Source of the DNA: Epithemia pelagica
Lineage: Eukaryota > Protista > Bacillariophyta
DNA: 64,000 bases
NCBI GenBank assembly: GCA_946965045.2
Contig: OX459761.1
Location: 62,001 to 126,000, forward strand
Direction: 5' to 3'
Of the stretch, positions 17,401-18,300 are shown piece by piece; position 1 is the first letter of the stretch; the number at the start of each line of letters is the position of its first letter. Position numbers and translations under genes: made by a program. The notes beneath the pieces are model-generated. The model saw only the letters and a program-made list of their open reading frames with translations, made no database searches and had not been told where the DNA came from.

Positions 17401-17772
17401 CTAAATCGGATTTTTACACGAAAATGTAATATTGCCTGTTTGGCATAAGTGAACAAAATACTTGCATCCTAGTGAGATATAAGTAGTTAATGGTGTCACT
17501 TTTTTCAAACCTGGTATATTTCCGCAAATATGATTGCTTACATCAGCAGTCGTTCCAACAACGGATATTGTAAAACATACCATGTCCTTACATTGGTATG
17601 TAACAACACAATCTTTAACACCTTTAGCAGTCATTAGACCACTGGTACCTGATTTTACACATTCGGTTGTTTTTGCGGCTGCATCAGCACCCCCATGTAT
17701 TGTTTGATTAAATTTAGCTAGACCATCACCAGGAGAAGTAACTACTTTTCTTGGTGAGTTTATCCCAAACAT
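17401..17772 (-). CDS. intron cargo, Cys-rich small protein (123 aa)
   Basis: GAGGA SD-like sequence before ATG 17772; paralog of 17911-18300 (CKDMVCF…VGTTAD…PG…ISLGCKYFVHLC). Confidence 0.8.
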   Translation of the reverse strand: MFGINSPRKVVTSPGDGLAKFNQTIHGGADAAAKTTECVKSGTSGLMTAKGVKDCVVTYQCKDMVCFTISVVGTTADVSNHICGNIPGLKKVTPLTTYISLGCKYFVHLCQTGNITFSCKNPI

Positions 17773-17788
17773 ACTATTCCTCTTTAAT

Positions 17789-17911
17789 TTATAATATAAT
17801 AGACAGGGAAGGTGTTTTTTCGATTTCAGAAATTGAGAATCTTTCAATCAACCCTGAGTCTCTAAGAGAATCAACAAGTTTTTCCTCAAATTCTTTATAA
17901 TTTATAGACAT
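17789..17911 (-). CDS. intron cargo, 40-aa ORF translationally coupled to the upstream gene
   Basis: TAATG stop-start overlap at 17911; MSINYKEFEEKLVDSLRDSGLIERFSISEIEKTPSLSIIL; below the ORF-track cutoff. Confidence 0.5.
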   Translation of the reverse strand: MSINYKEFEEKLVDSLRDSGLIERFSISEIEKTPSLSIIL

Positions 17912-18300
17912 TAACAACCTCCCCAGGGTAGTTTAGATTTCTTACAACACCACACAAAGACTTTACAACCCATTGAAATTGGAGTTGTAACTAAAGCTGT
18001 CACATTTGGACCTGGAACAAATGAAGCGCAAATTTGTAAAGAGTCCGCTACAGTTCCTACACATGAGACTGCAAAGCAAATTCCGTCTTGACAAGCGAGA
18101 GCTTCAAGCGCATCAGCTGTCCCTTTTGCAGCACCAGCTGCCCCAGTAGTTGCTCCAGTAATTTTTGTTACATATTCAATTCCACTGTTAGCTGCGTTAC
18201 CAATTTTTGTCGGAGACTGCAGTCCATCATTAATCCCCTTAGTTAAATTATAAACTTTAATAAGTGGCCATTTTAAGATTTTAACAATTTTAATACTCAT
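17911..18300 (-). CDS. intron cargo, Cys-rich small protein (129 aa)
   Basis: Intact ATG ORF; Gly/Ala-rich middle followed by CQDGICF…VGTVAD…PG…ISMGCKVFVWCC. Confidence 0.82.
   Translation of the reverse strand: MSIKIVKILKWPLIKVYNLTKGINDGLQSPTKIGNAANSGIEYVTKITGATTGAAGAAKGTADALEALACQDGICFAVSCVGTVADSLQICASFVPGPNVTALVTTPISMGCKVFVWCCKKSKLPWGGC

Follow-up and report, generated by a model that had tools for sequence, protein, structure and literature searches.

Here we describe a group II intron that carries passenger genes within its own ribozyme. The intron interrupts psaA in a 64,000-nucleotide (nt) stretch of DNA from the diatom Epithemia pelagica (GenBank assembly GCA_946965045.2, contig OX459761.1, positions 62,001 to 126,000; "the window" hereafter means this whole stretch), which is a diatom-type plastome segment with the rrn operon, psaB, psaA, and psaF among its genes. 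Inside the intron lies a cassette of about 1 kb with three open reading frames (ORFs) of 129, 40, and 123 amino acids (aa), named ORF129, ORF40, and ORF123, all in the same orientation as psaA and the intron, and the intron lariat with the entire cassette accumulates in vivo. Comparison with related introns and with metatranscriptomic contigs makes it likely, in our judgement, that this is a mobile psaA intron with passengers in a domain I hairpin, and that ORF129 and ORF40 among these passengers represent an endogenised fragment of an RNA replicon. The arrangement of intron and cassette is far beyond chance, and the same arrangement was found, with 100% identity over 3,900 nt, in a 134.7-kb metagenomic plastome contig (L005).

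The psaA intron, its domain I cassette and its lariat RNA

The psaA gene lies on the minus strand and is interrupted by a 3,504-nt group II intron (18482..14979) whose ends satisfy the 5' GUGYG/3' AY rule; joining of the exons restores the psaA reading frame. Orthologous psaA introns were retrieved from metagenomes and metatranscriptomes by searching with the intron-encoded protein (IEP), and were compared with the window by blastn. Some of these relatives are empty, that is, they have no cassette. The features that follow are listed in the direction of transcription, with the basis of each in brackets.

18483..20279, minus strand: psaA exon 1, ending in FLGLFWM (ORF list and sequence)
Final 13 nt of psaA exon 1, minus strand: intron-binding sites IBS2/IBS1, UUUAUUC/UGGAUG (complementarity to exon-binding sites EBS2/EBS1)
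14979..18482, minus strand: group II intron, 5' GUGCGAC, 3' UUUAAC (identical in L005)
18431..18470, minus strand: first domain I hairpin, GAUAAU...AUUAUC (consistent fold in the empty variants)
17342..18430, minus strand: second domain I hairpin, base stem GUACUUUC/GAAAGUAU, with the cargo at its tip (stem in all 10 variants)
17381..18411, minus strand: cargo cassette of leader, ORF129, ORF40, ORF123, and A-run (blastn breakpoints and comparison; absent in L017, L019, and L021)
18306-18323, minus strand: A18 run ahead of ORF129 (sequence)
17911..18300, minus strand: ORF129, ATG 182 nt past the 5' splice site (homolog of RNA replicon ORF1)
17789..17911, minus strand: ORF40, its start overlapping the ORF129 stop (UAAUG), with GGGGAGG 7-13 nt upstream
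17401..17772, minus strand: ORF123, a divergent ORF1 paralog, with Shine-Dalgarno-like AAGAGG/AAGGAG 7-9 nt upstream
17384..17398, minus strand: A15 run immediately past the ORF123 stop (A9-A12 at the equivalent place in L014, L016, and L022)
17216..17222, minus strand: EBS2, GGAUAAA (sole 7/7 complement of IBS2 UUUAUUC; conserved in 4 relatives)
17066..17071, minus strand: EBS1, CGUCCA, in a hairpin loop (pairs with IBS1 UGGAUG; conserved in 4 relatives)
17021..17028, minus strand: GGGGUCGU, putative 3' strand of the domain I closing helix (can pair with GCGACCC)
14980..16806, minus strand: IEP, 608 aa (Pfam RVT_N, RVT_1, GIIM (X), and HNH)
14979..15053, minus strand: domains V and VI (Rfam RF00029, 48.7 bits against a gathering score of 40)
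14986, minus strand: branch-point A, at -8 relative to the 3' splice site (L019, L014, X1, and X3 share the lariat junction CCUCU[A read as U]GUGCG)
14517..14978, minus strand: psaA exon 2 (ORF list and sequence)

Four metatranscriptomic runs were aligned to window positions 14500-19000. This revealed, in runs X1 and X3, a lariat back-joint in which 14987 is followed by one misread letter and then by 18482, and the metatranscriptome-derived introns L019 and L014 are circularly permuted, reading …CCUCU, one U, then GUGCGACC. The single misread letter at the junction of CCUCU and GUGCGACC is the mark left when reverse transcription crosses a 2'-5' branch, here at A14986. From X3 we obtained a single contig of 3,249 nt that corresponds to 14987..18202 with three mismatches, at a depth of 88, and spans the branch point, the IEP, domain I, ORF123, and ORF40 before running into ORF129; a 5' piece (18337..18482) was present at a depth of 91, and the gap between it and the long contig matches a skipped A/T run. 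Because the contig runs from the branch point into ORF129, the excised intron includes the cargo. An exon-exon joint from 14978 to 18483, with 3,504 nt skipped, was also seen in the metatranscriptome. Beyond its lariat junction, L014 continues (3382-3518) into a more divergent, cassette-less copy of the intron 5' region; two populations from a single metatranscriptome were probably joined there into an assembly chimera.

The IEP is intact, with reverse transcriptase (RT), X, and HNH domains, and it matches the NCBIfam model for group II intron RT/maturases (TIGR04416) with 310.5 bits against a cut-off of 300. A second candidate for EBS1, CAUCC at ~17255, was rejected; it lies in a covarying hairpin (GAUGAU/GUCAUC versus AAUAAC/GUUAUU), and the motif is absent from L019. 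When the window intron and three empty introns were searched against Rfam with an E-value threshold, only domains V and VI were matched and none of the D1-D4 models, and minimum free energy (MFE) folds of the whole of domains I-III vary among relatives, are unreliable, and were used solely for the two 5' hairpins. As to subclass (IIB1/IIB2, CL class), the intron would be IIB-like, judged from its EBS2/EBS1 layout and the published description of the related DEC-IX intron (PMC7554337).

The ORFs occupy the place given in the original prediction, about 1 kb of co-oriented coding sequence some 180 nt past the 5' end, as confirmed from the ORF list and the sequence. The covariance-model comparison that had been proposed for placing the insertion matched no D1-D4 model, and the placement came instead from the empty relatives. 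Ahead of both EBS2 and EBS1, the insert starts ~70 nt from the 5' end of the intron. At this point the empty relative L019 reads GUACUUUC-AAUAA-GAAAGUAU, a plain 8-bp hairpin right behind the first hairpin, and the corresponding hairpins of L021 and L017 are 32 and 91 nt long. Every cargo-bearing variant retains the base stem and lengthens it by pairing between leader and trailer, and in L018, L020, and L096 the stem has undergone a compensatory C-G to U-A double change. The cassette is therefore predicted to be looped out at the tip of the second domain I hairpin, and a hairpin loop whose sequence is free to vary fits a peripheral position. The closing strand from which domain I had previously been delimited is indeed present (GGGGUCGU, at 17028..17021) and is able to pair with GCGACCC, and the helix receives partial support from relatives, with a bulge in L021 and a mismatch in L017. 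Independent evidence places the cassette within domain I, as the hairpin stem is conserved and EBS2, EBS1, the IEP, and domains V and VI all lie downstream.

Could the cassette be a separate mobile element nested in the intron, such as a twintron, an insertion sequence or miniature inverted-repeat transposable element, or a homing-endonuclease cassette? Presence and absence at one exact site is what such an element would produce, and members of the same protein family occur in another intron and beside a LAGLIDADG ORF (L110). Within 17381-18411, however, Pfam and Rfam searches detected no transposase, recombinase, endonuclease, or intron RNA motif, and a repeat search found only A/T runs flanking the cassette, with no target-site duplication or terminal inverted repeats. 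No inner intron model was matched as would be expected of a twintron or nested intron, and the 3,249-nt contig and the lariat back-junctions place cassette and ribozyme in one contiguous RNA. A nested element, which the original prediction had named as an outcome that would overturn it, is thus very improbable.

We envisage a mobile IIB-type intron with its RT/maturase/HNH protein in domain IV and passenger genes at a domain I hairpin tip, where leader-trailer pairing would extend the hairpin and the ~1-kb insert would be looped out, so that the ribozyme core would remain undisturbed. The intron would be transcribed with psaA, and following branching at A14986 the cassette would leave in the lariat. 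The passengers may be translatable by plastid ribosomes from either the precursor or the lariat, since ORF123 has a Shine-Dalgarno-like site and ORF40 is coupled to ORF129 via UAAUG.

Variation, mobility and selection of the cargo

All orthologous introns share their first ~57-72 nt and everything from the equivalent of window position ~17350 onward, and differ in what lies between. The following states were observed.

ORF129, ORF40, and ORF123: window, L005, L006
ORF129 and ORF34 only: L008-L011
ORF123-type only: L014, L016, L022
Mini-ORF and an unrelated Gly/Ala/Cys-rich ORF88: L018, with a decayed copy in L020
Mini-ORF and ORF88, then ORF128 and ORF44: L096
Empty: L017, L019, L021

The mini-ORF encodes 17 aa with the motif M[LI]EFLKE.FWG.LGG.., and its stop overlaps the start of the 88-aa ORF (L018 150-500; L096 150-475). 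The two copies of this mini-ORF/ORF88 module, in L018 and L096, are 69% identical, with a ratio of nonsynonymous to synonymous substitution (dN/dS, or ω) of 0.15. Deletion junctions among the variants fall at A-runs. Judged from these alignments, the tip of the second domain I hairpin is a polymorphic and modular cargo site. Since the cargo varies among introns that are otherwise nearly identical, it turns over faster than the backbone, and in the closest pairs the dS of ORF129 and ORF123 (0.10-0.13) exceeds that of the IEP (0.03-0.05).

We next consider mobility. Compared with the window, the intron backbone of L008/L009 is 98.6% identical (2319/2352) versus 83.7% for the flanking psaA exons (216/258), and L014 gave similar values of 98.8% for the backbone and 81.7% for the exons; the contrast between backbone and exons is strong in both comparisons (Fisher p ~1e-24). 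L008 and L010 have the same exon and were assembled from different samples. Near-identical backbones between diverged exons therefore suggest a recent horizontal move between hosts, with the cargo along, and this identity contrast points to mobility of the psaA intron. Together with the intact IEP, it lends support to the proposal that a retromobile intron acts as a gene vehicle. Retrohoming would carry the intron and its passengers into intron-less psaA alleles, also across diatom species.

To what extent the cargo has been maintained was assessed from substitution rates. For ORF123, ω was 0.34, 0.23, and 0.17 versus L014, L016, and L022, respectively, with dS tracking that of the IEP. For ORF129 versus its copy in L096, a psaA intron whose IEP is 72% identical to that of the window, dN was 0.173 and dS 1.53 (ω 0.11), values close to those of the two IEPs (dN 0.191, dS 1.48). 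Comparison of ORF129 with a free-standing plastome copy (L012) gave ω of 0.11 at an unsaturated dS of 0.55, and ω of ORF129 ranged from 0.07 to 0.18 across contexts. These values, about 0.1-0.3 overall, indicate that the cargo ORFs are under purifying selection, and that ORF129 and ORF123 have long evolved as protein-coding genes, also while resident in the intron lineage. Neutral dN/dS had been set out beforehand as a ground for dismissing the cargo, and the ω values of ORF123 and ORF129 do not bear it out.

The same data speak to whether the cassette merely hitchhikes without a function, as an insertion that a peripheral loop tolerates and whose ORFs are open only because they are young. Loss of cargo is evidently easy and frequent, as seen from the empty and partly deleted variants with junctions at A-runs; a degenerate copy exists in L020, the small ORF is reduced to 34 aa in L008 and is interrupted by a stop in L001, and between the window and L008 ω is 0.64 for ORF129 and 1.3 for ORF40, from few changes. 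At longer distances, however, ω falls to 0.07-0.34 and cargo divergence tracks that of the IEP, and the Shine-Dalgarno-like site of ORF123 is conserved as far as L022, which makes a mere hitchhiker quite unlikely.

A probable link to an RNA replicon

Relatives of ORF129 that are 75-79% identical to it (P0010) are the first ORF of contigs of ~3.6 kb (L094/L095; 24 contigs). Behind this ORF1, L094 has an ORF2 of 340 aa and then an ORF of 597 aa that contains a Pfam RdRP_1 domain (E 3e-12), and the predicted RNA-dependent RNA polymerase (RdRp) carries clear SG..T..N and GDD motifs. L094 is the same contig as a viral genome in IMG/VR (L103). The order ORF1-ORF2-RdRp is retained in L104, in which the RdRp is 68% identical to that of L094; ORF1 is 75% and ORF2 56% identical between the two, making ORF1 the most conserved replicon protein. 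The RdRp clade comprised 139 matches, nearly all on contigs of 3-3.7 kb, and one member has been deposited as 'RNA dependent RNA polymerase [viral metagenome]' (GHN03336.1). The public runs listed with L103 are metatranscriptomes in 24 of 24 cases, with no DNA library among them. ORF2 shares 19 nt at its end with the RdRp frame, in L094 as well as in L104, and a -1 frameshift between the two is possible; no conserved slippery site was found at the overlap, and ORF2 and the RdRp had no NCBIfam match.

The cargo of the window resembles the 5' part of this replicon. ORF129 is 79% identical to the ORF1 protein of L094, and ORF40 corresponds to the first 40-45 residues of the 340-aa ORF2 (tblastn, 49% identity over 45 aa, E 2e-10). 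At the nucleotide level, the minus-strand stretch 17811..18270 aligns to L094 nt 180-639 (blastn, 74.6% over 460 nt). As a test for an RNA-virus-derived element, we asked whether homology extends collinearly over more than one replicon gene, and it does, covering ORF1 and the start of ORF2. ORF2 breaks off at the same point in the window (40 aa) and in L096 (44 aa), a match that favours a single old capture in the psaA intron family.

Other diatom plastomes contain further pieces. Replicon nt 3-1553 are found in plastome contig L001, with ORF2 frameshifted, and nt 2-748 in L098. Between rpl32 and ccsA, L101 has ORF2 and a 374-aa RdRp, the ORF2 pieces being decayed (L101/L102 6003-8125), and a 184.5-kb plastome contig (L100) has an intact RdRp ORF of 661 aa between dnaB and rps2 (7001-8986). 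Relative to the replicon, the integrated copies of the window, L096, L001, and L101 are truncated or decayed. The units are found complete in RNA but truncated or decayed in DNA, so that transfer from replicon to plastome by reverse transcription would be the parsimonious direction, and ORF129 and ORF40 are best read, on the homology available, as an endogenised RNA-replicon fragment. The two ORFs would have been copied into DNA from the 5' portion of an RNA replicon of ~3.6 kb that encodes ORF1, ORF2, and an RdRp; the RT of a group II intron would most likely have made the cDNA. ORF123 would be a more ancient and more diverged member of the ORF1 family, whose divergence has gone along with that of the intron. 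A viral origin of part of the cargo is probable and extends the original prediction.

Transfer in the reverse direction, in which ORF129 and ORF123 belong to a native plastid or plasmid family and the replicon acquired its ORF1 from plastid RNA, would account for the number and diversity of family members in plastome DNA, including free-standing copies and those in two introns of the window, and also for the replicon contigs having yielded no members of the ORF123 or ORF130 type; the ORF1 tree, which does not resolve, leaves room for it. It would not readily explain why ORF40 is merely the first 40-45 residues of a 340-aa protein, why the remainder of ORF2 and the RdRp occur in other plastomes in decayed or truncated form, why two unrelated plastome loci start at replicon nt 2-3, or why the order ORF1-ORF2-RdRp is conserved between replicons with RdRps only 68% identical. 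We thus regard this direction as unlikely.

Alternatively, the ~3.6-kb RdRp contigs could derive from transcription of a DNA element, either a diatom plasmid or a plastome island, in which case the cargo would be ordinary plasmid-derived foreign DNA. Terminal direct repeats suggest a circular template, the plastome contig L100 holds an intact 661-aa RdRp ORF, and uptake of plasmid DNA is known for diatom plastomes (PMC8070900, PMC8541233). Weighing against a DNA element are the libraries (24 of 24 RNA, 0 DNA), the intact RdRp motifs in a clade of 139 matches found nearly exclusively on 3-3.7-kb contigs, the deposition of GHN03336.1 as a viral-metagenome RdRp, and the filing of the contig as a viral genome in IMG/VR. 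We consider a DNA origin improbable.

Several points weigh against our preferred reading of a mobile intron with an endogenised replicon fragment as cargo. As regards the intron, the exon-exon joints could come from intron-less relatives, so that splicing is demonstrated by the lariat alone; the cargo-bearing hairpin is assigned to IA/IB by its order only; the repeat search found no footprint that would reveal how the module entered the hairpin; and the cargo proteins are predicted from DNA and RNA sequence. As regards the replicon, its RNA-only status depends on a ranked list of 24 runs, and its probable residence in diatom plastids is deduced only from integration into plastomes and from a G+C content of 33%. 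In replicon contigs L094/L103 (1-3648) and L107 the first 35-37 nt recur as a direct repeat at the end, a sign of circular or concatemeric RNA or of an assembler artefact; no ribozyme was found when these contigs were searched with Rfam. A maximum-likelihood tree of ten ORF1 copies of known context branches without resolution, giving no phylogenetic direction or number of transfers. Finally, ORF123, the psbB ORF130 type, and the ORF88 module were traced to no replicon, and look-ups of P0153 (ORF123-like) and P0214 (psbB-ORF130-like) returned short contigs without replicon genes.

Purifying selection in DNA leads us to favour, as speculation, a replicon-connected role (interference or support) for the ORF1-family protein over junk. 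By extension, a persistent plastid RNA replicon that is the counterpart of mitoviruses may have been repeatedly reverse-transcribed by group II intron RTs and fixed in plastid DNA, and the intron may have domesticated ORF1 in its modular domain I site and now spread it horizontally among diatom species, perhaps for replicon-derived interference or immunity or as a helper; we put this forward tentatively, as a possibility that we would doubt sooner than assert.

The ORF1 family itself is large, with 368 clusters at 90% identity in a set of 5.8 billion proteins and 165 representatives in the 50% library, so that the suspicion that the ORFs might have no homologs outside this genome can be set aside. 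ORF129 and ORF123 are paralogs, as originally proposed (BLASTP, 33% identity, E 2e-15), and the motifs D-x2-C-x20-PG-x13-GC-x2-F-x3-C and VGTxAD are family-wide; in an alignment of 43 sequences D72, C75, P96, C112, F115, C119, and C129 are invariant. The protein is small and basic (+6), with four invariant cysteines (C75, C112, C119, and C129), and is predicted with moderate confidence to be all-helical. An AlphaFold2 model of ORF129 has three helices (3-69, 73-92, and 100-121) at a pLDDT of 74, and Kyte-Doolittle analysis gave a marginal transmembrane-like segment in ORF129 (1.65) and none in ORF123. The ORF129 model had no significant structural match (E<0.1) in AFDB clusters, PDB, or BFVD; Pfam matched none of ORF129, ORF40, and ORF123; and in the ESM Atlas only unnamed clusters, mainly diatom, were returned for the family. 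The idea that ORF129 and ORF40 are a toxin-antitoxin or bacteriocin-immunity pair was rejected, as no Pfam or structural match was obtained (PADLOC was not searched) and ORF40 is a truncated ORF2 rather than a dedicated partner.

Free-standing family members occur in other diatom plastomes beside psbZ/ycf12, psbC, and ycf45, and further copies lie near rrn5 and by dnaK, where they share an island with a tyrosine recombinase. Right behind the psbZ-adjacent, free-standing ORF129-type gene there is an 81-nt remnant of the ORF123 3' end (L012 6386-6466, L013 1432-1512) that is 92.6% identical to window 17512..17432, so the order ORF129…ORF123 would exist, or have existed, outside the intron. Side observations on the family and its surroundings in the window are as follows.

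35876-38800, minus strand: second group II intron, in psbB, with domain V at 35957..35876 and an IEP at 36497..38308
35998..36390, minus strand: ORF130 of the psbB intron, a family member between the IEP and domain V (tblastn versus ORF129, E 4.6e-06)
44439-44711, minus strand: 90-aa Gly/Ala/Cys-rich ORF
44250-44417, minus strand: 55-aa ORF (no BLASTP alignment with ORF40)
29475-29661, plus strand: strong Rfam match to IsrR, the cyanobacterial antisense RNA of isiA (181.8 bits), which may reflect only the likeness of a plastid gene to isiA

In L110 (288-1148), an ORF for a LAGLIDADG_1 endonuclease is directly preceded by a relative of the psbB ORF130 type (55% identity), perhaps a further case of residence in an intron. 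Where group II introns encode a LAGLIDADG protein, its ORF is usually placed in domain III, rather than in domain IV as stated in the original prediction.

Comparison with known systems

Group II introns are usually viewed as minimal retroelements that carry their own mobility protein alone. Introns in psaA have been described for Toxarium undulatum, Haslea silbo, Climaconeis, Dictyocha speculum, and the uncultured dictyochophyte DEC-IX (PMC8070900, PMC8268801, PMC7554337); that of DEC-IX is of type IIB and is expressed in metatranscriptomes (PMC7554337), and that of H. silbo is 2,921 bp long with orf608 (PMC8070900, PMC8268801, PMC7554337). The E. pelagica intron resembles these in its host gene and in its RT/X/HNH IEP, which has the length of H. 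silbo orf608, and differs from them in that the published descriptions, in the passages concerned, mention an RT ORF alone and no domain I cargo (PMC8070900, PMC8268801, PMC7554337). The 2,921 bp of the H. silbo intron equal the length of the ORF123-only variant L014 (about 2,920 nt), and from this length match alone the H. silbo intron may carry unremarked cargo.

Catalogued intron variants include ORF-less introns, LAGLIDADG-encoding introns, twintrons, domain VII insertions, and degenerate IEPs (PMC4424553). Like these, the intron described here would be a derived form of a canonical mobile intron, enlarged by additional sequence in one peripheral loop, whereas none of the variants catalogued in PMC4424553 pairs non-mobility passenger genes in domain I with an intact domain IV IEP. 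Engineered targetrons carry cargo in domain IV, not domain I (PMC3898094). A passenger site in domain I would mean that the ribozyme tolerates ~1 kb there, which is relevant to targetron engineering, and that introns are able to serve as carriers of genes within organelles. In the limited collection of literature searched, nothing relevant was found on domain I cargo or on RdRp genes in algal plastomes.

The replicon link, if true, would explain where a part of the orphan 'orf12x' genes in diatom plastomes come from. In Thalassiosira oceanica, the plastome has a novel ORF, orf127, at a rearranged site, with a ribosome-binding sequence (GGGAGGG) upstream and two predicted helices (PMC3022921); a partial ffs duplication is present in that plastome as it is in the window, and orf127 is likened to the cargo by its description only (PMC3022921). 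A precedent for a plastid-associated RNA replicon is offered by the chloroplast-associated double-stranded RNA replicons of Bryopsis cinicola (Koga et al. 2003, as cited in PMC7511793), although this is a green alga with partitivirus-like segments, for which the citing passage reports no integration into plastid DNA or an intron (PMC7511793).

If true, the link would also be the first indication that RNA-virus sequences are endogenised into plastid genomes, and would make plastid-resident RNA viruses in globally important phytoplankton directly testable. The closest parallel is provided by the mitovirus-derived sequences of plant mitochondrial genomes, which are non-retroviral endogenous RNA-virus elements in organelle DNA. 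In both cases, fragments of an RdRp-encoding replicon would be present as DNA in an organelle genome, while on the diatom side the organelle is the plastid, the replicon has three ORFs and an RdRP_1-type polymerase, and one of the fragments appears to reside in a mobile intron under purifying selection.

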